Under the pieces are notes generated by a model. That model saw nothing but the letters and a program-made list of their open reading frames with translations. It was not told the DNA's origin and made no database searches. A program made the translations under genes and the position numbers. Of a stretch of 64,000 nt of DNA, positions 5,862 through 52,970 are shown one piece after another; the first letter of the stretch is position 1; each line of letters begins with the position of its first letter. Source of the stretch: Octopus bimaculoides (Eukaryota). The DNA is taken from the NCBI RefSeq assembly GCF_001194135.2, contig NC_068983.1, positions 74,057,020 through 74,121,019 of the forward strand. The letters run 5' to 3'.

Positions 5862-5899
<38 letters not shown>

Positions 5900-13258: not shown

Positions 13259-14872
13259 TTCTTTTTCTTTATTATAGGCGTAAAGCCTGAAAAAAAAGAG
13301 GGGACATCACAAGGACAGACAATACAAAACATGGGGTACATAGAACGTATCATATGAATATAATAAATAAAAGAATGAAATGGCTTACCTGCTCCCCAAA
13401 GCAAGCAGTTCCATTCTACTATTCTAATTAATCATAATTTCATCATTCTTTTTATACAGTCTTACATATCCTGTATGTATTCCAACAAATCATCGAACAA
13501 AACCACGTTCGGTAATGTGTCATACTGGAAAAAGTCTTGTTAGTTTTACTTCCTTACCAAACAGTGCCACCAGTTTATATGCTCTATCTTCCTCTAATAG
13601 TGCTGCTATCTCATTGCTGTGAAACAAGTCTAAGTCTTTGTCCAATTTTTCTCTTGTTAAATTTTATACTTTCACAATCCTGTTTTCAATCTCTTCTTAT
13701 ACATCACCATCATTCTTAAAGTCTGTCCTCTCGGCTGCCTTGTTTTCCTTGTTTGCACTATTTTTTCTCTTATCCTCTTCCTCCACCTCTCATATCTCTC
13801 TTGACTCCTACTTGTTGTCGGCTCTGGTTCCAGGATTCGAATCACACCCTCTTTCTCTTCTGTTTTTGCCGCCTTTCTTTTTTTTTTCTTTGTTTGGACT
13901 TTTTGGCAGTGACTCTGCACTTGTCCTTTTCTTGTTTGCCACTGTTTCTCCTACCGTTTCTTCCCCCACCACTGCTTTACCATCTCTGCCTGGTTTTTCT
14001 CCAATTCCTCCTGTTTATGGGGACACTGCCTGCATGTGTCCTCTACTTCTACAATTATAACATATAGGAAGTCTTCCCTCTACCACGATTCTCAATTGGG
14101 TCTCATCGGGGAGCATCAGCTCCTCTACTATTTTATGCATGTCTGGTAGGCTTATATGAATCACGACTTCTAGACCATATCCCCATCAGTTTATCTCATC
14201 AAACTTCTCCACCTTAATCACCTCCGCTTCCTTTTCACAATTATAGAGGATGGCTGCCACTAGCCATGCCTCATCTATTTCTGGGGGCACTCTCCCTATC
14301 CTGACTCTTGCAGCTCGTTTTCCGTAGTAGGTTGGCAAGAGTGCCCACTTAGCCATTCTCAAAGGCACCATGGAGCACCTTTTTGCTCCTTCTTCATTCA
14401 TGAAGCGCACTTCCACTGTGCCGTATTTCCTTCCTCTGGCGTAGACTGTGGTCACTCCTTTGACTTCCTGCATACACTCTTCAATGGCTACAATCTCTGC
14501 TACTTCCACACGTTTAATTTCAATAAACTATTATTTTCTTCTCGGCTTTTTGTAAAGCGTCGACAGGTGGCATTAATCGGAGGCAATCCCTCTCCTTTTC
14601 AAACAATCCATTAAACTTAAAAAAATTTTTCCTTCTAACTTCACTTATTTCAGTTGCAGCATGTCGGCTGAAAGGCTCTTGCCTGCTACTGCAGTGTAAC
14701 TGCAAGCTTCCATATCTTCACCCCAAAATGGGGAAGAAATTAATAAATTAAACAATAATTAACAAAATTCCAACAATATAGCAGTTTCAAAAATTCAAGA
14801 TACAACTCCCCACTCGCGACAACAACACTATCGTCCAACCAAATCAACAACGCAACTTGAAAAGCTGCGCGA
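13259..14872 (-). mobile_element. ORF1-only (HAL1-like) Tx1-type retroelement, copy 1; ORF1 disrupted
   Basis: ORF 14186-14509 (RGRKYGTVEVRF, RVRIGRVPPEID) continues past a stop to CYNCRSRGHMQAV. Poly(A)/AATAAA and terminal hairpin at 13259-13310. No ORF2 sequence. Confidence 0.85.
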
Positions 14873-17714
14873 CACTTATTTCTTTATTTGGCGCTACAGC
14901 CACAACACAGAGGGGGACACTACAAAGACAGACACAACACTACAACAGGGACATAAAACGAATGAGAATGAGATGTTATATAAAAATGAAGATATGAAAT
15001 GGCTGCATGGGCTCCACTCTCATGGAGTACCATTTGAACGTTTATATACACTATTTACAATCGTTCTATTTTTCTATTGTTTTTTTTCTTAATCATCTTT
15101 TTTTCTTTTTTTAACATGAAACACTTTTCTTTTTCTTTTTTTTTTACCTTTCAACAAAACAATTTTATTTNNNNNNNNNNNNNNNNNNNNNNNNNNNNNN
15201 NNNNNNNNNNNNNNNNNNNNNNNNNNNNNNNNNNNNNNNNNNNNNNNNNNNNNNNNNNNNNNNNNNNNNNNNNNNNNNNNNNNNNNNNNNNNNNNNNNNN
15301 NNNNNNNNNNNNNNNNNNNNNNNNNNNNNNNNNNNNNNNNNNNNNNNNNNNNNNNNNNNNNNNNNNNNNNNNNNCTTCTTGGTTTTCTCTTTTTCTGTTC
15401 CACTTCCTTTTCTTTCGCCACTCTGAACAGTCTCTCCATTTCACCCTCGTACAGTTGCACTCCTGAATCTTTTTCCTTCGCTGAGATAACCGGTATCTTC
15501 AACACTGTTTCCTCCTTCTATAACTCCTTCTCGAACACTTTTTCAATTTCTTTCTCCACCACCCTTTTGTCTTCCTTCCTTCCGGTCGCAGCTTTCATTT
15601 CCACCTCTTCTTTTTCTGGTTCTCTGGTGGCGGGCTAGCTCTTCCACTTCTCTATTTCATTAAATTGGCTATTAAGGCCTTACAAAGAGGGGACAAACAA
15701 GGAGAGACAAACGTAAAGAAGCTGTGGGCTGGACACGGACATTAATGAGATGAAGGTGATAACAAAAAAGGTTGAAATAAAAATGGGAGGGGCACCGGCG
15801 CCCACTGACCGATAACCCCTCGAAAACATTGTTCAATTTAAATATGCATGAAAAAAAAAAAGAACCCAATCATTTGGGTCCCCAAGCAATTTGACTTGCC
15901 GCCCGCAGACAACTCTGCAGCGACAAGTCAGGGCCCGCAAAAAGGAATGCGAGCTCTTTTTTGTCAAGGGTCATGGAGACCCTTGACAACAATGAATGCT
16001 GTACTATCTCCGCAGCTACCTGCGGAGGCCACAATGGACTGAGTGTGTGCTTNNNNNNNNNNNNNNNNNNNNNNNNNNNNNNNNNNNNNNNNNNNNNNNN
16101 NNNNNNNNNNNNNNNNNNNNNNNNNNNNNNNNNNNNNNNNNNNNNNNNNNNNNNNNNNNNNNNNNNNNNNNNNNNNNNNNNNNNNNNNNNNNNNNNNNNN
16201 NNNNNNNNNNNNNNNNNNNNNNNNNNNNNNNNNNNNNNNNNNNNNNNNNNNNNNNNNNNNNNNNNNNNNNNNNNNNNNNNNNNNNNNNNNNNNNNNNNNN
16301 NNNNNNNNNNNNNNNNNNNNNNNNNNNNNNNNNNNNNNNNNNNNNNNNNNNNNNNNNNNNNNNNNNNNNNNNNNNNNNNNNNNNNNNNNNNNNNNGCGGG
16401 CACTTTATCCTGCTCCATGGCCTTATTACGGCCTTTGGGGCAGTTCTTTTTGATGTGGCCAGCTTCCAGGCACATATGGCACCTCGGTTGCCAACCCTCA
16501 ATATTAACCGGGTACTTTGCTCCGGCCAACTTCAAGAAATCCGGAAAGCACACGTCTCCTACAGCCACTGGGGACCACAAGGTCAATGTCGCCTTGGCGC
16601 CCTGCCAGTTGACTGCAGGTGACATGTGCACATTAAGGAGCCTAGGTCCACTGTCNNNNNNNNNNGCGCCCTGCCAGTTGACTGCAGGTGACATGTGCAC
16701 ATTAAGGAGCCTAGGTCCACTGTCCCCCAAGCCCTGCCGAATGGTATCAGCGATCCACTCGGCCTTGTAAATTGGAGGTAGTCCATGAACCCAGGCTCTA
16801 ATTATTCTTCTTCCGCAGTAAGAGGGGAGGAACAAAATTTCCTCCCCCTGCAGAGTCTGGCTTGCCGCATTAGCAGCTTCCTCAGGGGAGTCAAACAACA
16901 ACCACACCGTTGCATATTTGACCCCCCTGGAGATGTAATATTTCTTTGTTGGCAAACAAATTGCCAACTCTTTTTCAATTACCTCTTTATTGAAGAGAGT
17001 AATGGTATTGCGTGACCTACAATAGGTCCGCATGACCACCGTCCTCTTCTCCATTTCTTTTAACCACTGCTTGGGTGGGCACAGTTCCCACTCGACTTAT
17101 CGTTTTCCTTCCCACCACCGTGAATTCCTCCTCCGTTGTTTTTTCTTCCATCTCCACATGTACTACCTTGTCCGTACTCTCCTGGTTCTCCGTCTGTTAT
17201 CTCTGTGGGCACCTCGCCTTCATGTGGTCTTTTTCCCCACATGTAAAACATACAGGCGGCCTGCCCTCCACCACCACCACTCTCAATCTCAAGTCATCGA
17301 GCAGCACTATCTCCTCAACAATTCGGTTTAAGTCCTCTATTGTTGCTTGGATGGTCAACTCAATCCCGTATCCCCAGTAGTTGATTCTTTGTGTCCTTGT
17401 GGCCTTCAGTATCTTGGCCTCCCCCTTCATGTTAAACATTATCTCTGTCATCAGCCATGTTTCTTTTAGTTGTAGGGGCACTTTGCCAACTCGCACTCTG
17501 GCCACACGTTTGCCACAGTATGATGGCAAAAGCACCCACTCCTCCGATCTTATTGCCTCCGTGGAATGCTTAATTGCCTTTTCCTCTGTTGCAATATCAA
17601 TAACAATATCAACAATTTGAACAGTAATAATCAAACAAACAAATATTTAACGCTCTGACTGACGACAAAAACACTCCGTTATGAATAAATCAAACCACCT
17701 ACACTACGCGACGC
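14873..17714 (-). mobile_element. ORF1-only element, copy 2, split into 14873-15660 (C-terminus and 3' end) and 17094-17714 (RRM/CCHC part) by copy 3
   Basis: Both halves align to consecutive parts of the element at 44732-45800 (EGRPPVCFTCGE..HMKA; QLYEGEMERL). Confidence 0.65.
15661..17093 (-). mobile_element. ORF1-only element, copy 3 (divergent family B, ATVWLLF), 5' truncated, nested in copy 2
   Basis: ORF 15870-17054 with CHMCLEAGHIKKNC knuckle; 3' box gaggggac at ~15687-15694; homologue at 54286-54900. Confidence 0.8.
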
Positions 17715-19260: not shown

Positions 19261-19285
19261 AAGTATAAAGTATACATAGATGTAT

Positions 19286-20925
19286 TTATTACCCACTAGG
19301 GGCCAACAAAGAGGAGACAACACATCACATGCGGGACAAAGAACAAGTAAAAAAAAAAGGAACAAAACAACTTATGAATAATAATGAAAAATGTAAATGG
19401 GACCCACTTACGAGCAGCTCCGTTTTCTACCCTTTACTTCCTTTTGAAACCCGTTCCCTCGATCCCTCGGGAATATCAATCCCAGTTTCTTTCAGAAGCC
19501 TATCGTACATCGTAATTTCCGGCAGTGCTTCCCAATCGAAATCCACCTCGCCGAAACTGTAACCGTGCTTATACTTAAATATTTTTTCCCCTTGTTCCTT
19601 TGTTGGTAGCACGCACCTGTGCCAATCCTTAATGTTATCGAAACACACAGTTCCTACTTCGTTTATATCGTCCCAGGACAACACCTCTTCAATCAAATCG
19701 TCATTAGATCTATATATAAAAATTTTACATTTTTTCTTCCTTCTTGTTGACTGGTAAGAGGGAGTTTGTGAGTCTTTGTGTGTACTTGTCTTTTTTTGTT
19801 TTTGTGTCGGAAGGGAATGGGTAGGCTTGGTGTCTGTGGGCAAGGGTGGGTCTGAGAGGGTGTGGGTATGGTTTGCGGTTTAGAGTTCGAAACACTTGCC
19901 TTCTTTCTCTTTTTCCCACTTGTCTTCTGATATTACTTCCACTTCCTTTCTGGTTTCTTCTTCCCATTTGGTGGTACTCTCCAATCCTATTTCCATTTGC
20001 TCCTCCATATTCTTCAGTCGCTCTTCCTCTACTTTTTTGATCTGTGAAGGGCAGTTCGCTCTAATGTGGCCTTTTGGGCAATATTTAAAACATCGAAGGA
20101 CTCTTCCCTCCACCCTGTCCCTCATTTTCACGTGATTCTGTGATATTTTCCAGTATTTCACTTCAAACTTGGACAGTCATATTCAGTACCTGTCCTTTCC
20201 ATATGGCACTTTATTTTTTTGTGGCCTGGAGAACCACTATGTTGTCCTCGTTTCCTAGAAGGACAGCGGCTGCTACTCAAGCCACATCAATCTCTGGTGG
20301 AATTCCTACGCTAATTCTCGTCGCACGTAGACCACGGTAAGTGGACAGAAGCACCACTTCCTCACTCTTGATGGATGTCGCTGCTTGTTTCCTTGCTGTT
20401 ACCGCGTCCTTAAACCTCGCCTCCACTACTTCAAACATTGAACCTCTTGCGAGGTACACAATATCACTCCATATCGGTCTTAATGCCTTCTCTACCTGGC
20501 CTGTAGTCACAACGTCGATTTTTCCTTTTGAAACTGAAAATGTTCGGTACATAATGGTTCTTTCTTTAATACTATTACGCGTCTCTTGCGGGAGGGACAG
20601 TTTCACTTCAGAATTATTCCGACTCAAAAATTCATTGTACATTCCCAAATTCTCAATATCAATCTTCTTTCCCTGGCATTTTGCCACGTCAGCAAAATTC
20701 CTCTTTTCCTTGTTCAATTTCTGGTCCATCTTCCGGACCGCCTCCAACAATTCCTCCTCCAAAGACGATATGTCTGAGAAGCTGAAGTCTTCTACAGACA
20801 TATTTTCCCAAAGCTAACTCTCCTCTACGAGAAGAGAAAGCATAAACAAGCAAACAAACCGCAGCAAAGCAGCACAAAACGTTCACACACGATAGAAAAA
20901 ACACTATGAAAAACGCTAACAACCA
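19286..20925 (-). mobile_element. ORF1-only element, copy 5, with a 25-bp TSD
   Basis: ORF1 pieces 20277-20801, 19880-20161 and 19427-19843. Flanked by AAGTATAAAGTATACATAGATGTAT at 19261-19285 and 20926-20950. Confidence 0.9.
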
Positions 20926-20950
20926 AAGTATAAAGTATACATAGATGTAT

Positions 20951-22509: not shown

Positions 22510-22533
22510 AAGTATAAAGTATACATAGTTGTT

Positions 22534-23230
22534 GATTTTTTTAATTACCCATAAGGGGCATACACAGACAGGACAATACATGACATGTGGGGACGTATAA
22601 CAATTAAAAAATAATAAAATTATGATAAATATGAATGAAAATGATATATGGAAATGTGCTACTTACCCCACCTCAGCAACATCATTTACTTCCTTTTAGA
22701 TCCAGTTCAAATTAATTCCATATCGTTCTTCCAGTTCCCTTCACACTGCCTCTAGAAGTTCTTCTTCCAAGGTACGTGGGTAAGACAATCATCCCTTTCC
22801 GTCTTCATAGAGTTTACGGAGTATTCCCTGGCCTTTTCCTTATTTTTAAAATGCACATCAATTGTGCCGTATCGGTTTTCTCTGACAAGATATGCTATAT
22901 CTTGCCAGATTGGCTTCAAAGCATTTTCTATTTCTTCCGTAGGTTTGTTTTCTATTCTTTTTTTCCTTAATTGAATATACCTATATACTATTTTCCTTTC
23001 TTCCATGTTTCTTAAAACTTCTTTAGGTGGTAAGTTTTACATCACCACCTTCTCAATTCAACATTTTTTCGAAATTCAAATTTTTTAGGCTTGCCTCCTT
23101 CTTTGGAACCTCCGTCGCCCCCACGAAACTTTTACCCTTTAGGCACTTGTCCATTTTTTTACCGATTTTACAAGCTCCTCCTCGGATGACGACAGTTCTG
23201 AAGACGATACCTCTGATCCGCTCAGGTCCG
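22534..23230 (-). mobile_element. Internally deleted, 5'-truncated ORF1-only element, copy 7 (~0.7 kb)
   Basis: ORF 22752-23006 (LKPIWQDIAYLVRENRYGTIDVHF) joins directly to the 3' UTR. The 5' end breaks inside the DLSGSE motif at 23230. Confidence 0.85.
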
Positions 23231-26097: not shown

Positions 26098-26140
<43 letters not shown>

Positions 26141-27673: not shown

Positions 27674-27712
<39 letters not shown>

Positions 27713-27762
27713 CATATGTAAATATATAAAGTGTGACGGTTTAAAAGTTTAAGTATTTAACG

Positions 27763-30492: not shown

Positions 30493-30505
30493 CACGTGAA
30501 AACTC

Positions 30506-30772: not shown

Positions 30773-30812
30773 CACGTGAAAACTCGTCCAGCAATAAATG
30801 AGTGAACATCGA

Positions 30813-32700: not shown

Positions 32701-32705
32701 TACAT

Positions 32706-33945
32706 ATTTCTTTATTGGCCACTGAGGGTCCAACATAGAAGGGACAGCACAACGTGGAGACATAAAACATAGATAAATAAATGAGGATGAAATGGCTACT
32801 GAACTCCACTTACAGTAGTACCATTTGACTGCTTTTTTCATTGTGCACCCTTTTACTATAAAAACAAATACTTACCATATTCCACCACTGGAGGTAGAGT
32901 GTCAAATTTCACCCCCGGACCTAGTGGGTCTATTTTTTTTCCTAAATGTTTCTTTTAATTTTTTAAAGTTTTCTGTGTCAACAATGACACATTTCATGTC
33001 TGATGGGTACTCCTCTTCTGATACTTTAACTTTTATTGCTGTTTTTATTTTATTTATCAATGGTCGAGCTCTTCATATAGGTCATAATATATGTCCTGTT
33101 TCTATGCTCGGCCAGAGAGGTTTGTCGATTAAGTATGTCTGTTTGTGTGTGGAGGCGCAATGGCCCAGTGGTTAGGGCAGCGGACTCGCGGTCATAGGAT
33201 CATGGTTTCGATTCCCAGACCGGGCGTTGTGAGTATTTATTGAGCGAAAACACCTAAAGCTCCACGAGGCTCCGGCAGGGGATGGTGGCGAACCCTGCTG
33301 TACTCTTTCACCACAACATTCTCTCACTCTTTCTTCCTGTTTCTGTTGTGCCTGTAATTCAAAGGGTCAGCCTTGTTACACTGTGTCACGACGCTGAATA
33401 TCCCCGAGAACTACGTTAAGGGTACACGTGTCTGTGGAGTGCTCAGCTACTTGCACGTTAATTTCACGAGCAGACTGTTCCGTTGATCGGATCAACTGGA
33501 ACCCTCGACGTCGTAAGCGACTGAGTGCCAGCAACATCGTCTGTTTGTGTGCCTGTATACATATTGAGAGAAGCTGGGTTGTTTGCAGTGATGGTTTCTT
33601 TTTCTGGGGTGTCTGCAGAGGTGAGGTGGGTGTGCTGTCTGTCTGTGTTTTCTGCGTGTTGAGTAATGTGTGTTGTTCGATTTCCTCCTTTTTTTTTGTT
33701 TTTGATTTTTTTGGGGGTGGTAGGAGTGGGGGTGAGTTTTCTTACTCCTTCCTCTTCCTGCTTGGAACTTCCTGGAATTCTTCGACTGTGTGTGTTTTGT
33801 TCCTGTGTTTTCGATGTCGTTGTTCTTCTCATTTTGGTTTTCCTCTTCCGGCATTTGGTTATTAATCTCGGGGCAATTCGCTTTTATATGTCCCCTACTC
33901 CTACAGTGGTAGCAGGTGGGACGTCTCCCCTCTATTACCACTCGT
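32706..33945 (-). mobile_element. 5'-truncated ORF1-only element, copy 10, interrupted by a SINE
   Basis: ORF 33492-33941 (CYHCRSRGHIKANC); 3' end at 32706-32750. Confidence 0.8.
33150..33538 (+). mobile_element. tRNA-derived SINE with a 13-bp TSD
   Basis: Same family as 2572-2949; TSD GTCTGTTTGTGTG at 33137-33149 and 33539-33551. Confidence 0.9.
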
Positions 33946-34463: not shown

Positions 34464-34509
<46 letters not shown>

Positions 34510-36390: not shown

Positions 36391-36397
36391 ATCAAAA

Positions 36398-39300: not shown

Positions 39301-42300
39301 CTGATTCGATCTTCTCGTAACTTCGTTCATCAGACATCTCATCTTTCCTTCTACATACCACTGGGGTGACTGGTATGTTCATTCTTGCCCAACCCAGCAT
39401 TCCACAGCCCCCTCCGACAATAGGCAGTGCATCCACCCGATGCCAACAGCTCGTGGAAAGCAAATTCGTGCATCCACCCGATGCCAACAGCTCGTGGAAA
39501 GCAAATTCGTGCATCCACCCCTCCGAAATGGTGAGGTGTCACACACCGTCGAAGCTCGAAACGATATGCGAAAAACCAGTGGTGATCCCCGGTGGTCATC
39601 CACCTGCAGTGGACCAGAGGTCACGACTCACCGGACCTCACCGAGACGAATGGATCATAACGTACCACGCAACCCCGTCCGGAGCGGGTCTTCACTTACA
39701 ATTGACGCGGGTCATAACATACCCTGTGTCGGTCAGTCGATTTTACCAGGAGGCAGGCAATCGGCAGCCCACCAATCACCTCCGGAAGGCCCACGTCTTT
39801 CAATCGGGATCAACCCACACACTACATGGTCCCCACCAGACTCGCTAGAACCGCTACTGGGAAGGGACACATTTAGTTTGTTCATGCGGGGGCATATATT
39901 CGGCATGGTTTTTTCAACCTATCCGACATACCTCCCCACACGGACGTAAGCACTTTCACCACGCCAAGGTAGTGTCCCAAAGAGTAAAGCCTGGCAGTGC
40001 ATCCATCAATCAGGCAAAATTCAGTAGATCACCTCACTCGCCCATCATCCACCGAATCCCGAATGATCATAACATACCAGGCAAACCCGATGGTGCATCC
40101 ACCCACTGACTATTGGCGTCCTAGCTGCCAATATACCTTCACAGGGCAGGCACATAAACCCACCGCCACCAGTCACAGCGACGTATCCGTAGGCCATCGC
40201 AGGTGCAATTACTACTCGACAACCGGCCACCGACCGTCTCTCGACTCCAATGTTCCAATAGGACACTGCAGGTGTTTACCCCAGCCGTAGCAACCCACAC
40301 CGATGTTCCAATAGGACACCGCAGGTGAATCCGCTATCGATAAGAGAGGCCCACTAGCCTAGGGCGGGTGGGCCTCCTGGGGCCCACCCCCTGCAGGGGA
40401 ACGACCGATGCACTCACCCAACGCGGAGAGATCGGTCAGACCACATCTAATCAAGCCCCAGCATATCATAGTGTGGTTGTGACATCGTTCGGTAGAAAGC
40501 ACACCCACCTGTGACGGAGCCATAGGTGCACCCACCCATGCAAGGGACAGTGGGTCATAACACATCAGGCCCCACGAAAACAGACTCAAATTTATTGGCT
40601 CTCTTGAGGACATACCACCATTTATTATTAATAATGGTACCGGTTAATGCCCTCTGAATCAACAACCTAATCCGATCTCTGTACTCCTTAATCGCCAAAA
40701 GGGACGTATTAAGTTTCCAGTAGCCGGAGCCTCTAGTATATCGCTTACTATATCAAGCCTACAGGTGATCATTTTATGATCACTGTAGCTGACTGGGTAA
40801 AACTGTGGACACTTAGCTATATTTCTATCTACTTTTCTAATTAACACTATATATGACCTGGAAGATCCGTCGCTATTTGACCAAGTCCATATTGGAGCGT
40901 TCGGAAATTCCAACCTATAAGGGTCTGCGAGCTCAAAGCGACTTTGCAGTTCCAGGAAGCAAGAATTACCTTTTCTAGTAGTTTTTGAGCTAACATAATA
41001 TACGCGTGCCTCGCAAATTGTGTTAAAGTCACCTGGTACAACTAAAGAATGTGAAGTACCGAGAAAATTCTCCAGATTTCGAAAAAAAATCACTTTTCCC
41101 GGATGGCTGGGGTGCATAATTTGCAACCAGTCTGAAAACTTTACCATGGCTGAGCGTCAAGTCCATGACGACCAGCCTACCTTCTGGATCTGAATAAATT
41201 AACTTTTTCTCAGAAACCCAGTTTCTTTTTAATAGAACCCCACCCCCTAGAAGGACAGCCTGGAGAGAAAAAACTCTCGTAGCCATTCAACAGGGGGAGC
41301 AGATCTCTCGGTTCTCTTAATCGGGTCTCTGTAGCAACAGTAACATCCAAATCCCGCAACCTGATGTCATAAAGGAAGCAACCTTGCTCCCAGCCTAACA
41401 TCAGGCCACGCACATTTAAACAACCTACATGAATGTTTGCCACTACCTACCTCTGCATCAATGGTTCGGGGTTCCTTCTTCCACTTTTTCTTCCTCCTTT
41501 TCCTGGGCTCGTGCCGTATTTGGACGTAGGCCCTCGTAAATATAAGGAGAAAAATCCATTCTGAGAGGGCCCATGTCGTGAAAGAATTCAGACTTGATCC
41601 GTCCGTAATCCTTCCGGCCTATCCTGTAGATTAGAAAGTTTTTTGATGTTGTTTTTTCCACTCGTTTGGCAGATGAAATAGCTGCCAAACGGTTTATTAG
41701 TCTATTGTTGGACGCCTTGATGGCTATGTACGTGTTTTCTTTTTCCTTGTCGTTTTTCTTTTTTAAATTTAGTGTGGTGGGGGCGGTCTGTGTCTTTTCT
41801 TTTGTTTTTTAGAAGCAGTCGACCACCCCTTCTCTCTATCCTTCTCTTCACTCTCTTCTGTCGATCTTGGTGTTATCTCTACTTTCGGTGTTGACGCTGG
41901 TGTTTCGTTTGTTTCTTCTAATCCTTCTTTCTCTTGTTCTTTTTCTTTTTCTTGTTCTTCTTTCGGTTTGCATTCCGACCTGATGTAGCCCTTTAACCCG
42001 CAATTAAAGCACCTTGGTTTTCTTCCTTCCACAAAAACTATTAGTCTTTCTTCTCCGCCTACATTTATGATTTCTGCAATTTCTTCAAGTGTTGTGGCTT
42101 CTGCTTGAATTAACATTATCAAGCATTGTCCCTTCCAGTGCTCCTCTTCTTCCACAGAGGCCTGGAGTATAGTTAGTTTGTCCTCCAGGCCCATCGTAAT
42201 AGCTGCTACTAAACAAGTGGCATCAACTTCTGGGGAGATATTGATTATCCTCATCTTTGACGTTCTTCTTCCCATATATACGGGAAGAAGAACCACCTCC

Positions 42301-43010
42301 TCCGTTCTGAGGGACTCCTAGGAGTAGTTTTTGGCTGCTTTCTCTGACCTAAACCTTACTTCGACCGTTCCAAATCTTTTACCGCGGTTAATGTATGTAA
42401 TCTCTGGCCAAATAGGTTTAAAGCATTTTTCTACGATTTTCTCTTCTGTTTTGTAAATCCTTCCCCCCCCCCCNNNNNNNNNNNNNNNNNNNNNNNNCGC
42501 AATGTTGTACGTTTTGTGTGATTCTTCTCTTGTTGACTGTGTTGGTTGTTTCTTTTGGGGTGACCACTTGAATTTCCGACCCCTCTTTTTTTAATATTGC
42601 CATGAATCTTTGCAGATAACTTCGTTCCGTGTTTAACTGTGTTTCTTTCCTTCCTGCTACCTCGGCGAACTTTTTGGGCGACTACTGCCGGTGAATTTTC
42701 TTCCCCCAAAATATTTAGTTCTCTCGGTGTTACTATCGGTGAAATTATTTCTTCACCTGCTTCAGACACAGGTGAGTACTTACTTGGTGGAAGCAAAGTA
42801 GTTTCCATTTTTTCCCCCACAAAATTGGCTTAAAAGCCACCAGATATAATAACAATAATACCCCCGCAGGGAGGAATTTCAACAAGTAGCTTTCACAAAA
42901 GTAATTAAATTATCTTTAACAAGATAATAGCAACCACCCACAACAGTACTTCAATCGAACAAAACACGGAGGAAAAGCAAAACGTACCAACAGCAGGTGC
43001 TTCCACAAGA
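36398..43010 (-). mobile_element. Near full-length autonomous-type Tx1/L1-clade non-LTR retrotransposon (ORF1 + APE-RT ORF2), frameshifted, with a 1.3-kb insertion
   Basis: ORF1 41458-42830; APE 40659-41443 (GCLNVRGL, ETRL, GDFN, SDH); RT 37678-39246; C-terminal LAWQCYRGALPVRDKL; poly(A) and hairpin at 36398-36433. Confidence 0.92.
37678..39042 (-). CDS. Non-LTR reverse transcriptase domain (Tx1/L1 ORF2)
   Basis: NFRPITLLNAELKILAK, LDQSKAFDRVDH, VRQGCPLSPILY, YADDIT, IKLLGVWF. Confidence 0.95.
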   Translation of the reverse strand: MVEAQRGNDATIRSLTNQQGKLINEPEEMCETFQEYFTXXXXXXXXXXXXXXXXXXXXXXXXXXXXXXRRDLTDFLGGLPRLSGLDAERGEGPITPEEVIEAMAGCGAGKVPGLGGLPYELYKSMPDLFGHMLANVYANWQQNGFIPRSVRRGVVTLVRKDPNKGDSIDNFRPITLLNAELKILAKVLSKILARVTDGLIGEAQTCAVPGRTIQDNLHLTRYTLEEFNNDAGKGGALVHLDQSKAFDRVDHRYLVSVLAQFGLGLGFFRWIIEIYNNIDSVVRVNGFSSKPFNIKRSVRQGCPLSPILYVMALEPLLRKLSVIPRQPGCGKSVSAYADDITIIVTEMDHLQIVGKAIEVYETVAGAKVKREKSVGLQLGTWRGKSMPPDSVVVRWTEGPIKLLGVWFGPNLQIEKNWAEVSSRVTHIVKTWSWRWLSLKGRAEVTNVFIXXXXG

Positions 43011-43031
43011 ATGAGAGTATCAAGACGATGT

Positions 43032-44698
43032 ATATTTTTTTTATTACCCACAAGGGGCCAACAAAGAGGGGTCATACAATTACATTGGGGACGCATAAAA
43101 TGTACAATAAAATAAAATACAAAACAAATGAAACGTATGATATAATGAAAGATGGATAAATGTAAAGATGGAAATGGTGTTACCCGCCCCATCAGGCAAC
43201 ACCACTTGCTTCATTTCCCCTACACTCCATTATGTCCAACTCAAATCTCTCTGTCAGTTCGTCAGACCAAATAAACTGTGGTAGCTTCTCCATATCGAGG
43301 TTGACATTTCATAATCTACATTATGTCTCTGTATGTCCATCCTTTGCTGTGCCGATAATAGTAGCACCACAGCATTCATATCTTCTGCGCTAACATGGAC
43401 CATATTTTCCCATTTGAAAGCTTCTGCAAACAGTTCTTTATCATGAATTATACACGCAAAACTTCTATTGGAGGGGGAATTTTTTGAAACACTGTCTGTA
43501 TGTACTCTCTTCTTTTGTCTTTGTGATGGAGGGGAATGAGAAGGCTTGGTGTCTGCAAGGCGAGGGTGGGACACAGAGGGTATGAGTGGGCCTTGGGTAG
43601 TTGATGTGTGAAGTTCTGAGTGTATTGGACTTGCCTTTTTTCTCTTCTTTCTCTTTCTTCTCTCTTCCCATTCTTCCTCTTTTTCTGAAATCAATTCCTC
43701 CTCCTCCTGTTCTTCTCGAGGCCTCTCCTGCATCTTCTCCTTGCTGCTGTCTTCTTGCACTTTCTCCACTCTTTTGTCTGGTAGAGGGTGCATTTCTTCC
43801 ACTCTTTTATCTGGTAGAGAGTATTTCGCTCTCATGTGGCCCTTCTGACCACATTTGTAACATTGCGGTATCCTGCCCTCCACTCTTACATTCATTACAA
43901 CTTCGTCCAGAGTTATTGTTTCCACCATCTCTTCTAATGCCTCACTTGAACCTTGTACTATCATATTTAGGACCTGGCCTTTCCAGTTTGCACTTTTTAA
44001 CTTAGTTGCCTGGAGCACCACTACTTTGCCGTCAGTCTCGGCCAATACAGCTGCCGCTATCCAGGCAACGTCAATTTCCGGAGGAATTCCTTCTACCCAT
44101 ACCCGAGACGCTCTACGTCCTAGGTACGTGGGTAGAAGTACAGGCTCTTCCTCCTTCAATGAAGTTGCCGCATGCTTCTTCGCCGTGTCTGCGTTTATAA
44201 ATCTCACTTCTATTTCACCAAATTTCGGCCCTCTGGCAAGATATGATATTTCGTGCCAGATTGGCCTCAGCACCTTCTCCACCTGCTCCGTCATCATGTG
44301 GTCTATTTTCCCTTTCTTGATTGAGTACGTTTTATACATTATTGTTCTACTTTTCATCTTTTTTGTGGTTTTGAGCGAAGGGGACACGTTAACGTTGTAA
44401 CCGTTTCGACTCAACAACTTCTTGTATTTCTCCGTATCAATTTCCACATTGTCATCTTTTTCTCGGGCGATATTCGTGAACTTCCTCTTATCTAATTCTA
44501 TATCCATTGCGTCAACAGCCTTCAACAACTCTTCCTCAGATGTCGACAACCCAAACCCGCTAAAGTCTGAGTAAAAGGAATTCCTTCTACTTTTATTAGC
44601 CATGCAAACTCTCAAGGAGAGAAAGCACAGCTACACCGCTGCAAAGCAGCACGCAAAAAACAAAATAATCCTTGCTGAACGATATTTCGGTATCTCGG
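43032..44698 (-). mobile_element. Full-length ORF1-only element, copy 13, with intact ORF and a 21-bp TSD
   Basis: 5' UTR, 453-aa ORF, ~220-nt 3' UTR, hairpins and poly(A). TSD ATGAGA(G/C)TATCAAGACGATGT at 43011-43031 and 44699-44719. Confidence 0.92.
43254..44615 (-). CDS. Uninterrupted 453-aa ORF1/gag-like protein (Ser/acidic N-terminus, RRM-like region, CCHC-type knuckle, charged linker, unknown C-terminal domain)
   Basis: ORF track. RGPKFGEIEVRF, RVWVEGIPPEID, CYKCGQKGHMRAKY (last Cys substituted). Confidence 0.85.
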   Translation of the reverse strand: MRVCMANKSRRNSFYSDFSGFGLSTSEEELLKAVDAMDIELDKRKFTNIAREKDDNVEIDTEKYKKLLSRNGYNVNVSPSLKTTKKMKSRTIMYKTYSIKKGKIDHMMTEQVEKVLRPIWHEISYLARGPKFGEIEVRFINADTAKKHAATSLKEEEPVLLPTYLGRRASRVWVEGIPPEIDVAWIAAAVLAETDGKVVVLQATKLKSANWKGQVLNMIVQGSSEALEEMVETITLDEVVMNVRVEGRIPQCYKCGQKGHMRAKYSLPDKRVEEMHPLPDKRVEKVQEDSSKEKMQERPREEQEEEELISEKEEEWEERRKRKKRKKASPIHSELHTSTTQGPLIPSVSHPRLADTKPSHSPPSQRQKKRVHTDSVSKNSPSNRSFACIIHDKELFAEAFKWENMVHVSAEDMNAVVLLLSAQQRMDIQRHNVDYEMSTSIWRSYHSLFGLTN

Positions 44699-44731
44699 AT
44701 GAGACTATCAAGACGATGTCAAAACATGCGA

Positions 44732-45800
44732 TTTCTTTATTAGGCATAAAGCCCCAAACACAGATGGGGACACCACAAGGACAGACAAGACCACAGTGGG
44801 GGCCAAAGAACATAAAACGAATGTAAATGAAATGAAAGTTATATAAAAATGAGAAAATGAAATGGACGCACGGGCCCCACTCCCATGCATTACCATTTGA
44901 ACTGTTATATGTACATTTTACAATTGTTCTCTTTTTCCTTAATTTCATACTTTTTTCTTGTCTTTAGTAAAACTTCATTAGTGGTTCAATTTCTCTTAAC
45001 TCCACTACTGGTGGTAACTCTTTAAATTCCACCTTTACTCCTGGCGGGTCAACATTATCCCCACACATCTCTTTCAATTTTCTATAGTTTTCTTTTTCGA
45101 TCACTATTGCCTTTATATCCTCCGCGTAGACGTTTGAAGGCACCTTTACTGTTACTATTGAATGTAACTTGATTATTTTTTTCTCTGTTTCAACATTTTT
45201 CGGGTACGTTACATAATACCATACTCCTTCTCCTCCTCGTATCTTCTTTCCTTTCTCTTGGACTTTTGGTTCTCTCTTTTCTTCCTCCCTAACTAGTCTC
45301 TCCATCTCCCCTTCATACAGTTGGGTTTCCGACTCTTTCTCCACTGATAACTCCACTTTCTTTTTACTTTCTTTTTCCTTCCTACTGCCCTCCTTCACAG
45401 TTTCTTTTCTCACCTCTTCTCTCTTCTTTTTCTGCTTCTCTGGCGGAGAACTCATTCCTCCGCTTCTCCTTTTCTTTTTAGCCATAGTGAATCCCTTCTC
45501 CGCTTCTTTTTCTGTTGCCTTGCCCTGCACTACCTGGTCCACACTCTCCCGTCTCTCCACCTGTTCTGTTTGTAGCTTCCTTTGGGTGCACTATGCCTTC
45601 ATGTGGCCCCTTTCTCCACATGTGAAACACACTGGTGGCCTACCCTCCACCACGATCCGTAGTCGAGTGTCATCGGGAAGCACGAACTCCTCTGCAATAT
45701 TATGTAGGTCCGGTAGGGTAATGTGGGTTAGGATTTCTACCCCAAAACCCCACCATTTGATTCCTTTTGACCTTTCCACCTTAATTATTTCTACCTTGTC
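44732..45800 (-). mobile_element. 5'-truncated ORF1-only element, copy 14
   Basis: ORFs 45591-45800 (CFTCGERGHMKA) and 44964-45560; terminal hairpin 44742-44754. Confidence 0.85.
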
Positions 45801-46927: not shown

Positions 46928-46948
46928 AACTCACACTTTGAACATCGA

Positions 46949-48688
46949 TTTTTTTTTATTGCCTATAAAAGGTAAAACAAAGAATCTTCCATTAACATTA
47001 CAACACATAGAGACAATACCAACGCGACAAACACAAAATCGGGGAAATAAAAATACAAAAAGATGAAATCAGAAGAAATTAAAATAACGAATGGTAATAT
47101 GTAAGAATGAAAAAATAAGAAATGGAAGTGATGTTACCTGCCCCTTCAAGTAACATCACTTACTTGCCTTTATGCCTGTCCTTCATAATATCTATACCGT
47201 ATCTTAATTTCAGTTCTTCGTATTCTATATTTTTCGGTAAATTCTCCATATTGTAATTCACCTTCCATACTATAAAGTCCTCGAATTTTTTGATTTCGTT
47301 CAAATGTCTTTCTGTTATTAGAATTACTGTGATTTCTCCAGACTCATTCATGATCGTCCACGTCCACATGGACTGTGTCTTTCCATCTCTCCACTATCTC
47401 CTGCAGTTCTTTCACTGCCTCATAATACACCAAACATGCATAACATTCAGAGAAAGAGGAAGTTTCTAACACATTGTGTGTGGTGTCCTTCTTTTTCTTT
47501 TGTTTTCGTGTTGGTGAGAAATGGGTAGGTATAGTGTCTGCAGGGGGAGGGTGGNNNNNNNNNNNNNNNNNNNNNNNNNNNNNNNNNNNNNNNNNNNNNN
47601 NNNNNNNNNNNNNNNNNNNNNNNNNNNNNNNNNNNNNNNNNNNNNNNNNNNNNNNNNNNNNNNNNNNNNNNNNNNNNNNNNNNNNNNNNNNNNNNNNNNN
47701 NNNNNNNNNNNNNNNNNNNNNNNNNNNNNNNNNNNNNNNNNNNNNNNNNNNNNNNNNNNNNNNNNCTGTTTGTTTTTTAGTATCTCCTGTGTATTCCGCT
47801 CTTCTGCTTCTTTGTTCGGTTGAGAGCAATTCGCTCTAATGTGGCCCTTCAGACCACATTTATAACAGCGAGGGATTCTGCCCTCCACCCACACTCTCAG
47901 ACTTATGTCGCCTATGGTTATTGTCTCTGCCAATTTTTCTAGTGTTTCTTTATCGCTTTGGATGTTCATTTGTAATGTTTTCCACGTCCCGTCTTCAGTT
48001 GATGTAGCCTGGATAACGGACACCTTTTCCTCACATCCGAGGAGTGCAGCCGCCGCCACCCAAGCCGCTTCCATATCCGGTGGTATTCATTCTACTCTGA
48101 CCCTGGAAGTCCTTCTTCCAAAATACATGGGTAGAAGGACTACATTCTCAGTTTCACCGTTTTTATAGCCATCCTTTGTGCTGCCTCTTCCGACTTGAAC
48201 TGTACTACTATTGAACCGAATTTATTGCCTCGTGAAAGGAATATTACGTCTTTCGTTACAGTTCGTAACGCCTTTTCTATGGTTTCAATTTCAATAATTT
48301 CCACTTTATTTTTTTCTGCTGCAATTAATTTATACGTAATGGTTCTTCTTTCCATACTTTCCTGCGGTGGCGACAGTTTCACTTCTCCACCCACTTTCGT
48401 TGCCATTTTCTGATATTTCAACATTTTCGTGAGGTCCACTTCACATGATTTAACCTCTGCTATTTCTGCAAAGCTTTTCTTCTCCTTCAAAACTTCATCC
48501 ATTTTGTCGAGAGCCCTAACCAGTTCATCTTCCGAGGATGACAATTCTGACCCACTCAGGTCAGAACAGAACATATTTTTTGCCATTTGGTCCAGTTAAT
48601 TCTCCTCAACACGGAGAAAAAGCACCGCCGTCAAAAGCTTCACACAAAAATTCAAACAGACAGCAAATCACCAATAGCACGCACTGCC
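46949..48688 (-). mobile_element. Full-length ORF1-only element, copy 16, with a 19-bp TSD
   Basis: ORFs 48140-48586, 47466-48074 and 47160-47460. TSD AACTCACACTTTGAACATC at 46928-46946 and 48689-48707. Confidence 0.9.
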
Positions 48689-48709
48689 AACTCACACTTT
48701 GAACATCTG

Positions 48710-49145
48710 TTTTTTTTTTTATTACCCATGCAGGCTAACATAGAGGGGACAGAACAAAACATGTGGGACGTAAAACATATATAAAAAAACAGAAATGAAT
48801 GTTATAACGTATGAAGACATGAATATGATAAAATGGAAATGGAACCACTNNNNNNNNNNNNNNNNNNNNNNNNNNNNNNNNNNNNNNNNNNNNNNNNNNN
48901 NNNNNNNNNNNNNNNNNNNNNNNNNNNNNNNNNNNNNNNNNNNNNNNNNNNNNNNNNNNNNTCGAACCATATATTCATGTATTTATTTCTCTTGCTTCTT
49001 ATTTGGTATTACACACTTGTGATGCCCCTCCACGTTATCAAACCCCACAGTTCCAATGCACTTTATGTCCCATTCCACCGAATCCCTCAACAGTTCGTCA
49101 CTATGCAACATGTAAATCCTACACTTTTTCCTTCTCTTTTTTGAC
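48710..49145 (-). mobile_element. 3' portion of an ORF1-only element, copy 17 (same family as copy 19)
   Basis: C-terminal domain KCRIYMLHSDELLRDSVEW; 3' UTR near-identical to 51986-52110. Confidence 0.85.
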
Positions 49146-51975
49146 TCGTGATTGGCCCTTCGCAAGACTCCGCATCCGACCCCGAGAGACACTGCAGACC
49201 GGCAAGAAAGTCCTCGAGGGCTCTCCCACCACCAGGACCGCCGTCACCACCGAACAGCTGGGTGCAGTACTTCCGAAAGGCCTCACACATTTTCTCGGGT
49301 TCGTTTACCAAAACGCCATTTTGATTCGTCAAAGATCGTATAGTGGAACGATTTCCTTGCCGAGCTTCCACCACTCGGGCCCATCTAGCGGCCTTGATTC
49401 CTTCATTTCCCATCGCACGTAACTTAGCTCTGGCAATACTTCCCATGTGTTGGGCTTCAAGATGCTGGTTTAACTCCAATCTTTTCACTTTTGCTTGGTC
49501 CGTATTACCAGTCCTCCAGGCTTCTTCTAGTCCTTTAACTAAACCATCTCCTATTCTACATCCCTTCTTAACTAAACTTATGCTAAACCTAATAGACTCA
49601 TATTTGATGGCTCTTTTTAGGGCGTACCACTATTTGTTATTAATGATGGTACCTGTCAATGCCCTCTGTATTAATATATTGATTCGCTTTCTGTATTCCT
49701 CAATCACCAAAAGGGACGTATTGAGTTTCCAGTAGCCAGATCCCTGACTATGTAACTTATCTATTGTCAGTTTACAGGTAACCAACTTGTGGTCACTGTA
49801 GCTGAGTAGAAAAAACTGTGGACACTTAGCTATGGACTTATCTGTTTCTCTAATTAAAATCATATCTAGATATGTTCTGGAACACCCGTCACTATTTGAC
49901 CACGTCCATTGTGGATTGTTCGGGTGTTCCAACCTATATGGATCTGCTAGCTGAAAGTGACTTAGCAGATCCCGTAAGCCTGGGTTACATTTTCTGTTCA
50001 TGATCGAGCCAACACAATCTGTGTGTGCCTCACATATTGTGTTAAAGTCTCCTAACAATACTTGCGAATGCGACATGGCCAGGAACTTGCCCAGGTCACG
50101 AAAATATTCACATTGCGGGTCCATAATGTTGGGTGTATAAATAGCAACTAGCCTGATTATCTTGCCACAACTGAATGTCAGGTCGAGAACGATCAGCCTG
50201 CCTTCTGGATCAGAAAAAAAACAACTTTTTCTCGGCTNNNNNNNNNNNNNNNNNNNNNNNNNNNNNNNNNNNNNNNNNNNNNNNNNNNNNNNNNNNNNNN
50301 NNNNNNNNNNNNNNNNNNNNNNNNNNNNNNNNNNNNNNNNNNNNNGGGGGGGGGGAAGATCTCTTGGCTCCTTTACCCGGGTTCCGTTGCAACAATCACA
50401 TCCAATTTTCTTGACAAACGAAGCGTCCTTGCTTCCAGCTAGACATCAGGCCACGAACATTTACACAACCAATGTGAATAGACATGACTTACCTGTTAAT
50501 CAGGGCTGTCCGGTGGAGAGGGACCCTCCACCTTTTCTTGATACAGGGTCGGAGGTGGCAGGTCTTGGGAAATAGATTGGTTAAAATCCAGTCTCATTAC
50601 TGACACAGACTTTCTATACGTATTTAATAAAATATTATGAGTCTTTTTGTCCATTTCATATAGTTCATAATTTTTGTATTTGTCCGACAGTTTTGCTACC
50701 CTGGTGGCTGATTTTTTTGTTTTTATCTCTCATTAAATCCTCATTGTTACTAAGTAGTGCCACAATCCCTCTGTCTGCTATTTCTTTCCTTGTTGTTTTT
50801 GGTTGGACTCTTTTTGCTATCTTTTTTGGTCGTGGTTCTGCTTGTTTTGGTTGGTTTGCATTTTCTTTTTGCTAGTAACTTTATTTTCTTTTTTTCTTTT
50901 TCTTCCTCCTCATCTTCAGATTCCTCCTCGCCTTCCTTACAGTATTTTTTTATATGGCCTAGCTGGCCACACAGAAAACATCGGGGTTTATACCCCTCGA
51001 CAAAAACGTTGAGGAACTCCTCCCCAACTTCTATTTTTTCCGAAAGCTTTTCTAATACAGCTTGTTCAGTTTGAATAATGAGGTGGACCGTGTGGCCAGT
51101 CCAATTTGCCTTTTCAGAGACGGTAGCCTGAAGTAGTTTTATCTCATCTACTCTTTCTGACAGGACTGTCGCCATCAACCACATAGGGTCGACTTGAGGT
51201 GGAACCTTTGGTATCCGTATTTTGGCTGTCTTCATACCCATGTATATTGGTTTTAAAATTACGTCTTCTGTTGCCAAGGATTTCACTGAGTGCAATTGTG
51301 CAGTTTCGATATTTTTTAGGTGTACCTCGATGGTACCGAACTTTTTTCCTCTGGCTAGATATGTGATATCCTGCCAGATGGGTTTTAAAGATTTTTCTAC
51401 CTTATCCTCGCTTACTCGCTCGATTTTTCTTTCTTTTTGGCAGTATGCCTTGAATATAATAGTTTTTATCTTCTCTGACAATAAAAACTCCTCTGGGGGT
51501 TGAACCTTGACAACGCCATCTTGAACTGTAATCATGTCCTTGTACATCAACAAATCATTTTTATTCGTCGACAGTTGGCGAGTTCTATCTCCAGCTGCAG
51601 ACGCAAAACTTATTTTCTGTTTGCCTTCCTCCTTTGAAGGCTTTTCACCTCGATGTTCCTCTTTGCAACGGGAGTCTTCGACAATAGTGGGAATTCATTT
51701 TCAGACGAATCTGAAACATCTTTCAACAATATTTTTTCAACTTTTTTTGCCTCTAAATCTGTCGAATCCTCGTTAGACGAAGACAAACTTCTTGGCATTT
51801 TGCCGGCAATTAATGTTTTCCCCCACGGGGGAAAACACAATAGTTTTCGAACGAAAACTGTAAAACAAATTTAAACAGCAAATACAACAGGAAATAACAC
51901 GGAAACAGTCCACAGAAACTACACTTAAGGTACAGACGCACTTCAGCAATAATACTTCCAGCTCACAGAGACGAA
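49146..51975 (-). mobile_element. Second autonomous-type Tx1 element (ORF1 + APE + linker), RT missing
   Basis: ORF1 50750-51840; ORF2 starts MSIHIGCVNVRGLM at 50485; APE 49630-50124 (LLGDFN, SYSDHKLV, GYWKLN); linker 49146-49488 breaks at GPIT. Confidence 0.88.
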
Positions 51976-51985
51976 ATACCAATTG

Positions 51986-52970
51986 CTTTATTGCCCACCG
52001 GGGGCTAAACATAGAGGTCACAAACAAAACATGTGGGATATAAAACATATATGAAAAATAAAATGGATGTTATAACGTATGAAGACATGAAAATGATAAA
52101 ATGGAAATGGAACCACTCGCCCCACTTACGAGTGGCCTCATTTTCTACTTTTAAAATCCTGAACCTTCTAACACATCGATACCTGTTTCCTCCAACCACC
52201 AATCATATGTAGTAAATCCTAGGAATGAGCTCCAGCTGAGAGCTGCAGTCCACCTCCCAAAAATAAAATCCAACCATATACTCATGTATTTTTTCCTCCT
52301 GCCTCTTGTCTGGTATTACACACAAGTGATTTTCCTCCACATTATTATACCCTACAGTTCCAATACACTTTATATTCCATTCCGCCGTATTCCTTAACAG
52401 TTCGTCGCTAAGCAACATATAAATCCTACATTTTTTCCTTCTCTTTTTTGACTTGGGGGAGGGGTTTTGGGCTTCTTCTGTATTTTCTGGTTGCTTTTTT
52501 CTTGGCTTTGATGTACATTCTACTCTTATGTGTCCCTTCAGGCCACATTTAAAGCTGCGTGGAACTCTTCCTTCCACCCTGACAGTCATAATTGTTTCTT
52601 CCATGGTTATTGTTTCTGTAATCTTTTTCATCGTTTCTTTTGACCCTTGGACTATCATCTCCAGTTGTTGACCTCTCCAGTTGACACACTCTTTTCTTCG
52701 CCTGGAGCACAACCATGTTATCCTCATTACCACAGAGGACCGCATCTGCCACCCTGGTCACATCAATCTCCGGTGGGATTCCTTCAACCGTGACCCTTGT
52801 TGCTCTCATGCCTCTATACGTGGGCAACAGCACCACTTCTTCGCTCCTAATTGTCGACCCTGCATGTTTCCTTGCTGCTGCTGCATTACGAAACCTCACT
52901 TCTACTGTTCCAAATGTTGGACCTCTAGTCAGGTATATTATGTCTTCCCAAAATCTGCTTTAACGCCTTT
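51986..52970 (-). mobile_element. 5'-truncated ORF1-only element, copy 19
   Basis: ORFs 52549-52899 and 52203-52745; terminal hairpin 51993-52005. Confidence 0.85.

Follow-up and report, generated by a model that had tools for sequence, protein, structure and literature searches.

Composition of the locus and the 3′ tails

The 64,000-nt stretch of Octopus bimaculoides DNA analysed here (contig NC_068983.1; "the window" below means this whole stretch) contains a head-to-tail pile of L1-superfamily non-long-terminal-repeat (non-LTR) retrotransposons on the minus strand. The subject of this study is a short hairpin close to the 3′ ends of these elements, which is carried by units encoding open reading frame 1 (ORF1) only as well as by relatives with ORF2, and which is probably the signal by which the ORF2-encoded reverse transcriptase (RT) chooses its template.

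A covariance model (61 nt) built on 17 tails and applied, unfiltered, to the entire window matches 16 tails, 16/16 of them on the minus strand, with a score drop from 33.9 to 11.2 bits. The tail is about 60 nt long and consists of a pyrimidine box (consensus TGTCCCCTCTaTGTT), 0–3 nt, a 4-bp G/C stem, a loop of 5–6 nt, AATAAA and a short specific end (GAAATC-like). The pentaloop follows the pattern YUURY and is mostly CUUGU. The stem is a perfect 4 bp in 12/16 tails, keeps 3/4 pairs in 3/16 and is bulged in 1/16, and none of the 16 hairpins touches an assembly gap. A preliminary description of this DNA had listed nine of these hairpins and a box just upstream; all nine are exact in minus-strand (transcript) sense, the box is real, and seven hairpins are added here (15667-15679, 20960-20972, 22547-22559, 32717-32731, 43046-43058, 46961-46973 and 48724-48736). 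The units and tails, U1 to U16, are as follows.

13260..13318, minus strand: U1 tail, ORF1-only; AGGC-TTTAC-GCCT at 13276-13288, then ATAATAAA
14875..14931, minus strand: U2 tail; TGGC-TGTAGC-GCCA at 14889-14902, then AATAAAGAAATA
15653..15706, minus strand: U3 tail, degenerate; GGCC-TTAAT-AGCC at 15667-15679, 3/4 pairs, then AATTTAA
17711..17767, minus strand: U4 tail; TGGC-CGTAAT-GCCA at 17725-17738, then AAAAAG instead of AATAAA
19268..23242, minus strand: U7, U6 and U5, successive insertions at a single host site; target of about 21 bp, ATCTATGTATACTTTATACTT, at each junction
19277..19336, minus strand: U5 tail, ORF1-only; GCCC-CTAGT-GGGT at 19291-19303, then AATAAA
20946..21005, minus strand: U6 tail, ORF1-only; GTCC-CTTGT-GGGT at 20960-20972, with a U·G wobble
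22533..22592, minus strand: U7 tail, 5′-truncated unit; GCCC-CTTAT-GGGT at 22547-22559, then AATTAA
30504..30567, minus strand: U8 tail, internally deleted mini-element of about 260 bp; GCCC-CTTGT-GGGC at 30518-30530
30808..30875, minus strand: U9 tail, ORF1-only; GCCT-TTTAT-AGGT at 30822-30834
32703..32761, minus strand: U10 tail; bulged GG(A)CC-CTCAGT-GGCC at 32717-32731
36393..36433, minus strand: tail assigned to U11; GCCC-CTTGT-GGGT at 36407-36419; 41 readable bases, then a 560-N gap (36434-36993)
36998..42518, minus strand: U11 body, the "autonomous" copy; ORF1 remnant 41976-42518, ORF2 41096-36998
43032..44698, minus strand: U12, complete ORF1-only unit; 5′ untranslated region (UTR), 453-aa ORF1 at 43254-44615, 214-nt 3′ UTR, GCCC-CTTGT-GGGT at 43046-43058
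44728..44784, minus strand: U13 tail, ORF1-only (ORF1 46828-46018); GGGC-TTTAT-GCCT at 44742-44754, then AATAAAGAAATC
46947..48688, minus strand: U14, ORF1-only (ORF1 48520-47799); ACCT-TTTAT-AGGC at 46961-46973, 3/4 pairs
48710..51970, minus strand: U15, ORF1 51556-50939 and ORF2 fragment 50217-49147 (APE to mid-RT); AGCC-TGCAT-GGGT at 48724-48736, 3/4 pairs
51979..52038, minus strand: U16 tail; GCCC-CCGGT-GGGC at 51993-52005

The hairpin had also been said to abut AATAAA followed by poly(A). The hexamer does adjoin the hairpin in most copies, but the copy at 17725 has AAAAAG and that at 15667 has AATTTAA. The poly(A) does not stand: only 0–12 A-rich bases separate AATAAA from the flank, and the tail closes with a short specific end instead. 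As a control, the 113 other AATAAA sites in the window were inspected, of which 15 (13%) have some 4-bp stem at the equivalent place and 1/113 has a G/C-rich one. At gathering score, Rfam 15 gave zero matches anywhere in the window.

Coding capacity

About 20 ORF1 copies lie between 14,000 and 54,600, on the minus strand only, with 25–82% identity in a tblastn search using a 453-aa ORF1 as query. The sole long open ORF1 has 453 aa (43254-44615, minus strand) and contains a CCHC zinc knuckle; its C-terminal 170 residues are without counterpart in other copies or the database. The database relatives of ORF1 are two UniRef proteins only, both from O. bimaculoides and essentially identical to ORF1 pieces of the window, and no relative was found among solved structures.

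Similarity to ORF2 is limited to two units, U11 (41096-36998) and the fragment in U15 (50217-49147), in which the remainder of ORF2 is missing and gaps lie at 48850-48961 and 50238-50345. ORF2 of U11 comprises an endonuclease domain (APE), the RT and the start of a zinc-binding C-terminus (zf-RVT region), and Pfam RVT_1 has a match in the window. Frameshifts, small gaps and about 1.3–1.45 kb of extra DNA at roughly 39130-40580 disrupt this ORF2; the extra DNA is G+C-rich (GC about 0.49) and interrupts ORF2 relative to the U15 fragment. By eye, the unit downstream of U11 also displays a short stretch of an APE N-terminus (about 34700-35100). When solved structures only were compared, the closest to the RT was human L1 ORF2p (E ~1e-31, vs. 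~1e-20 for R2). Related loci contain Exo_endo_phos, RVT_1 and zf-RVT domains, and one from Argonauta hians (L007) has the ORF1 plus ORF2 layout. On this evidence, the element has an affinity with the L1 superfamily, and its membership of the Tx1 clade is putative.

No ORF2 similarity is present in U1, U5, U6, U12, U13 or U14. The ORF1-only status of units is robust, since gaps of at most 560 nt are too small for a 3.5-kb ORF2 and five of the units (U1, U5, U6, U12 and U13) are entirely gap-free. Most units in the window are ORF1-only derivatives, and the window itself is an ordinary nest of mostly dead retrotransposons.

Covariation and strand of the stem

Pair statistics were computed on 39 tails (38 distinct), comprising the 16 of the window and 23 from O. 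sinensis, Argonauta hians and a JGI metagenome contig. Tails of a more distant lineage (ENA ERZ21867824) were left out of the counts, having been found by pattern search and eye and being undetected by model R1. Stem cells are paired in 86.8% of cases (38 sequences), vs. 13–47% with the 3′ partner slid by 1–2 columns in either direction and 9% at +3. For covariation, the score is 0.425 vs. 0.226 ± 0.032 in shuffled alignments, with 0/500 shuffles equalling it, figures that overstate independence because many of the sequences are related copies. A sounder measure is the set of about five pair-type switches that each need a two-sided change, namely CCC/GGG, GCC/GGC, ACC/GGU, GGC/GCC and CCU/AGG.

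From the outermost pair inward, the counts are GU 24, GC 5 and AU 4 at pair 1; GC 21, CG 8 and AU 1 at pair 2; CG 29, GC 2 and UA 2 at pair 3; and CG 29 and UA 2 at pair 4, all of them conservative, as copies with 6-nt loops are out of register in the alignment. Double (compensatory) changes occur at 3/4 pairs (GC/CG/AU, CG/GC/UA and CG/UA), and RNAalifold, unaided, predicted the same helix and no other. The stem thus covaries, as the preliminary description had proposed from its nine copies. The G·U at the outermost pair, found in 24/38 sequences, would read as a C·A mismatch on the opposite strand, so the constraint lies on the sense strand, i.e., on RNA. A longer helix, formed by the upstream box and the AAUAAAGA tail, was considered as well and is not claimed: 82.7% of its cells are paired, much of it owing to U-rich and A-rich composition, and it exhibits no covariation (0.076 vs. 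0.077 in shuffles).

These data bear on the view that the hairpin is a functionless short inverted repeat passed down within one repeat family. The stem has only 4 bp, the copies are related, and 13% of unrelated AATAAA sites have some nearby 4-bp stem, all of which would suit such a view. However, both arms have changed jointly at 3/4 pairs, a G/C-rich stem occurs at only one of the control sites, the slid controls reach at most 47%, and Octopus, Argonauta and a lineage of 49% RT identity with unalignable flanks all preserve the pairing, making the absence of any function very improbable.

Tails in other genomes

Loci outside the window were reached through protein look-ups. A 130-nt nhmmer profile of the window tails found nothing in these loci; tails of other species were matched by the 61-nt covariance model alone. 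Scanning metagenome data with the C-terminus of ORF2 gave zero confirmed loci. The contigs L005, L008 and L010 stop short of the tail and are uninformative. Three loci contain gap-free autonomous copies, in each of which the hairpin lies 200–250 nt after the ORF2 stop. In the JGI contig L001, the ORF2 C-terminus and 3′ UTR are followed by GGCC-CTTGT-GGCC, AATAAAAGAAATC and then (ATT)n. A segment of an O. sinensis chromosome (L006) has GGCC-CTTGT-GGCT about 210 nt past the ORF2 stop. The Argonauta hians locus L007 contains a near-complete element with ORF1 at 6155-6940, ORF2 at 7537-10966 (1140-aa-scale) and the hairpin UGCC-CUUGU-GGCU, situated in (ATT)n. A degenerate copy in L009, GTCC-TCTTGT-GGCC, adjoins (CA)n.

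The hairpin had been described as shared by autonomous copies on the basis of U11, and its general absence from autonomous 3′ ends had been named as a finding that would refute the proposed role. In the gap-free copies from O. sinensis, Argonauta hians and JGI, the hairpin is present, so this refutation fails. The window's own example is less secure, as that copy is broken and its link to the tail crosses the 560-N gap. The spacing from the U11 tail to its ORF2 is about 585 nt vs. about 625–675 nt expected from 141 missing codons plus the 200–250 nt of 3′ UTR in L001, L006 and L007, so it is plausible that the tail and the ORF2 remnant belong to one element.

Within 21 kb, L007 has about 20 further tails, carried by short elements without coding capacity. 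Three of these, adjacent and each about 150 bp long, end in GGCC-CTTGT-GGCT-AATAGAGAAATCTA; the hexamer is AATAGA, the hairpin is intact, and the tail is the only part in common with the LINE (long interspersed nuclear element). Their three heads coincide exactly with Rfam tRNA matches of 21.8, 19.2 and 18.2 bits, which fall short of the gathering score (29); box-like GCTCAATTGGTAGAGCG and GGTTCAATCCC can be seen, and ARAGORN found no tRNA. The sub-threshold tRNA-like heads suggest transcription by RNA polymerase III (Pol III). Short tRNA-like-headed elements of this type are seen at 4900-5362 of L007 and at some 17 further positions there, with AATAGAGAAATCTA replacing AATAAA; some are tandem copies spaced by about 157 bp. 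A second short family of L007 has a different head (4560-4730 and 11900-12163) and an identical tail type.

The distant lineage of ENA ERZ21867824 (L002-L004), with 49% RT identity, keeps (A)GGC-CTYGT-GCC(T) between flanks that cannot be aligned; its tails are undetected by model R1. Here, a second, variable hairpin lies between the conserved one and an AATAAA-like hexamer, e.g., CTTGTA-Tn-TACAAG or CATTGTAA-TCT-TACAATG. The hexamer is usual after this second hairpin and is missing in L004 at about 4250. Its arms vary, yet they remain complementary (CTTGTA/TACAAG, CATTGTAA/TTACAATG, TTGTATA/TATACAA and CCTGTAA/TTACAGG); such hairpins are at L002 4690-4715 and 11490-11515, L003 6240-6285 and 13215-13245, and L004 4275-4295 and 19595-19620.

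The short elements of Argonauta lack ORF1, have AATAGA and keep the hairpin, which weakens two other explanations. According to the first, the ORF1 protein (CCHC, gag-like) binds the hairpin or uses it for packaging, and its coating of the RNA would keep the hairpin in ORF1-only elements. ORF1 does have a conserved CCHC knuckle, retroelement zinc-knuckle proteins bind small G-containing loops, and the hairpin type tracks the ORF1 lineage in the window. However, this association is explained by co-inheritance, the 260-bp mini-element of the window likewise keeps the tail without ORF1, and the extreme 3′ position, next to the start of the complementary DNA (cDNA), suits a polymerase better, leaving a role in ORF1-protein binding unlikely.

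According to the second, the hairpin is a 3′-end-processing or stability element that presents or masks AAUAAA for cleavage and polyadenylation of RNA polymerase II transcripts. Its direct contact with AATAAA in the Octopus copies, and the ability of the upstream box to pair with the AAUAAAGA tail, would be expected of such an element. Against this, the box–tail pairing does not covary, the copies lack both a poly(A) tail and a transduced flank, the second hairpin intervenes before AATAAA in the ENA lineage, and the intact hairpin of the Argonauta short elements goes with tRNA-like heads that suggest Pol III. A processing signal is therefore, in our view, quite unlikely.

Target duplications, element ends and build-up of the array

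Target duplications delimit several units exactly. The mini-element U8 is flanked by a 13-bp duplication, GAGTTTTCACGTG (30493-30505 and 30773-30785); U12, with its intact ORF1, by a 21-bp duplication, ACATCGTCTTGATA(C/G)TCTCAT (43011-43031 and 44699-44719); and U14 by a perfect 19-bp duplication, GATGTTCAAAGTGTGAGTT (46928-46946 and 48689-48707). Because duplications of 13–21 bp flank them, ORF1-only units moved as such, and the hairpin was correctly placed on their 3′ ends in the preliminary description. The perfect duplication of U14 suggests that this CCU/AGG unit moved fairly recently. At the U5–U7 cluster, the core of ATCTATGTATACTTTATACTT is found at 19268, 20933, 22517 and 23231, and an unfilled paralogous site is present at 28113-28124; the other target duplications in the window, a small sample, differ in sequence.

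The duplications set the element ends 0–12 nt past AATAAA, with a recurrent end GAAATC/A in Octopus, Argonauta and L001, and neither a transduced 3′ flank nor poly(A) was seen at the copies so delimited. Such ends suggest that cDNA synthesis would start immediately past the hairpin on its 3′ side, irrespective of where the transcript ends.

Between a resident 3′ end and the new unit downstream of it lie 0–45 bp, and a single orientation is seen throughout (16/16). Repeated insertion, either into a self-duplicated target or into the first few tens of bases past a resident copy, accounts for the one-orientation array, and comparable arrays are found in L002-L004 and L007. Autonomous copies of one sub-lineage lie inside (ATT)n at two independent loci (L001 2020-2105 and L007 11190-11215), which suggests, in a small sample, microsatellite targeting like that of the Tx1-clade elements Kibi and Koshi.

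The spacing and orientation just described are what would be predicted if the inverted repeat acted in DNA, as a resident palindrome that draws the endonuclease and so builds head-to-tail arrays. However, with G·U pairs the repeat is not a perfect palindrome as duplex DNA, the U5–U7 cluster began with an insertion into a hairpin-free host site (cf. the empty paralogue at 28113-28124), and the LINE copies of L001 and L007 lie in (ATT)n. Tandem insertion is, moreover, explained by re-use of a duplicated target, as for the Tx1-linked SINEU-3 (PMC4494074). An action in DNA is thus highly unlikely.

Two other origins of the array, a tandem host gene cluster and telomere-type terminal addition (HeT-A-like), were ruled out by the target duplications, the unfilled paralogous site and the many broken ORFs. 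The Drosophila elements HeT-A and TART form head-to-tail, one-orientation telomeric arrays that mix gag-only and RT-encoding non-LTR elements, and the octopus array resembles them in its single orientation and in its mixture of ORF1-only and RT-encoding units. Unlike these, the octopus units have target duplications, intact 5′ ends and one unfilled paralogous site, which identifies them as internal insertions rather than chromosome-end additions.

A proposed role in template recognition

We propose, in keeping with the preliminary description and with a probability of roughly 60%, that these elements carry a 3′ tail of the stringent LINE type, in which ORF2p reads the hairpin and copies any tail-bearing RNA in trans; that ORF2p is the reader, and that the hairpin sets where copying begins, is what we infer from sequence. 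The hairpin would form in the sense RNA, and the RT (ORF2p) would grip it in choosing a template. Target-primed reverse transcription would then start a few bases downstream of the hairpin, at a point set by it, with no need of poly(A). Any RNA with the tail could be copied in trans, including ORF1-only units, internally deleted mini-elements and short non-coding elements with tRNA-like heads. One model matches the tails of the ORF2-bearing copies (L001, L006 and L007), the ORF1-only units, the mini-element and the Argonauta short elements. The last of these provide added support, since a tail shared between short elements and a LINE is the classical signature of tail recognition.

Several points weigh against this proposal. 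The 4-bp helix is weak alone (−3 to −6 kcal/mol at 37 °C). The relatedness of the copies inflates the shuffle statistics, as noted above, and the autonomous link within the window crosses the 560-N gap. The tails delimited by target duplications may have shortened after insertion. Lastly, no autonomous partner was seen among the sampled data for the two hairpin types of the window that have UUUAY-type loops (GGC/GCC and CCT/AGG), so these types would need another RT if the loop is read specifically.

A broader version of the proposal is possible but doubtful: cephalopod L1/Tx1-like LINEs would obey a strict tail code, made up of the hairpin plus AAUAAAGAAAUC and independent of poly(A), that feeds ORF1-only, mini-element and tRNA-headed SINE (short interspersed nuclear element) parasites, with the hairpin types representing separate, co-evolving RT–tail specificities. 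If this is true, not every L1-like enzyme would serve an ORF1-only element, each being paired with particular reverse transcriptases, the types at stake in one genome being CCC/GGG with the CUUGU loop, and GGC/GCC and CCU/AGG with UUUAY-type loops.

The tail described here adds an animal L1-superfamily lineage to the LINEs that apparently recognise a structured 3′ end in place of poly(A). This favours the idea that recognition of the tail was strict in the ancestors of the group and became relaxed in mammals. The signal is compact (13 nt plus a short tail) and mutationally testable. It also links three classes of non-autonomous elements in the very repeat-rich cephalopod genomes, where the covariance model could serve as an annotation marker.

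Comparison with known systems

By comparison, the signal is apparently of a known kind, that of UnaL2, ZfL2 and plant L1, here in a new group. A literature search found no published description of the cephalopod tail; Repbase and most subscription papers were beyond its reach, and an earlier description is possible. In UnaL2 and ZfL2, the tail stem-loop is required for retrotransposition and is bound by ORF2p (PMC1636434, PMC4176376). Like UnaL2/UnaSINE1-2 and ZfL2-1/ZfL2-2, the octopus family has a tail of about 60 nt common to the LINE and its non-autonomous partners, a pentaloop stem-loop and a short defined terminus. UnaL2, however, belongs to the L2 clade and has a much longer stem with a hinge, a GGAUA loop and a (UGUAA)n end with template slippage, whereas the window family belongs to the L1 superfamily and has a 4-bp helix, a CUUGU loop and the end AAUAAAGAAAUC, features known here from sequence alone.

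Stringent L1-clade LINEs of plants and green algae (LINE1-1_ZM and L1-1_CR) have a 3′ end shared with SINEs, compensatory stem mutations and conserved loop and flank nucleotides (PMC3472496). The cephalopod tail resembles these in its L1-superfamily membership, putative SINE partners and compensatory stem changes. We note three differences from these plant lineages: first, they have poly(A) repeats, whereas the cephalopod tail has no poly(A); second, their stem and loop are different; third, the cephalopod partners include ORF1-coding elements.

HAL1 (half-L1) of mammals is an ORF1-only derivative that relies on the ORF2p of an autonomous relative (PMC5753468), and the octopus units likewise encode ORF1 only and transposed in that form. 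However, HAL1 depends on the relaxed, poly(A)-based recognition of L1, whereas the octopus units keep a structured tail; the cephalopod lineage is thus an analogue of HAL1 and not a member.

Tx1-clade LINEs (Tx1, Keno, Kibi and Koshi) are related to L1 and prefer microsatellites or specific sites in other transposons, and the Tx1-linked SINEU-3 of crocodilians exhibits "tandem insertions sandwiching a TSD" (target site duplication) through sequential insertion (PMC4494074). What may be similar behaviour is seen here, in a small sample, in the two LINE copies within (ATT)n and the three units that share one 21-bp site. In contrast to SINEU, which has poly(A) and of which SINEU-1 has no known LINE sharing its 3′ end, the octopus tail is both shared and structured.

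Other features

A second, stronger hairpin is seen in the 5′ UTR, 10–25 nt upstream of the ORF1 start, in which a short loop separates a pyrimidine arm from a purine arm (−7 to −19 kcal/mol). It occurs on the minus strand at 44600-44625, 46818-46837, 30651-30677, 48595-48622, 51812-51836, 20813-20840, 14710-14739 and 42853-42879, with examples such as CCCTCC-GCATAGA-GGAGGG, TTTTCCCCC-GTG-GGGGAAAA and CTCTTCTC-GTA-GAGGAGAG; the arms vary among units and pairing is kept. It may be a translation or promoter-proximal element.

The NCBI entry P0124, [quoted passage not shown], has 72% identity to the cephalopod LINE ORF2 C-terminus and probably reflects contamination of a bacterial metagenome bin by host DNA. 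Similar fragments are present in the JGI "metagenome" contigs L001, L005 and L008.

An unrelated repeat pair lies at 2572-2950 and 33148-33530, with stretches of 218 and 138 nt at 93–94% identity, one copy being within U10. At about 5890-5935 on the plus strand, the end of another abundant repeat (CGACGGGCTTCTTTCAGTTTCC...) directly adjoins a (TA)n microsatellite; this repeat resembles a SINE of another family that inserted there.

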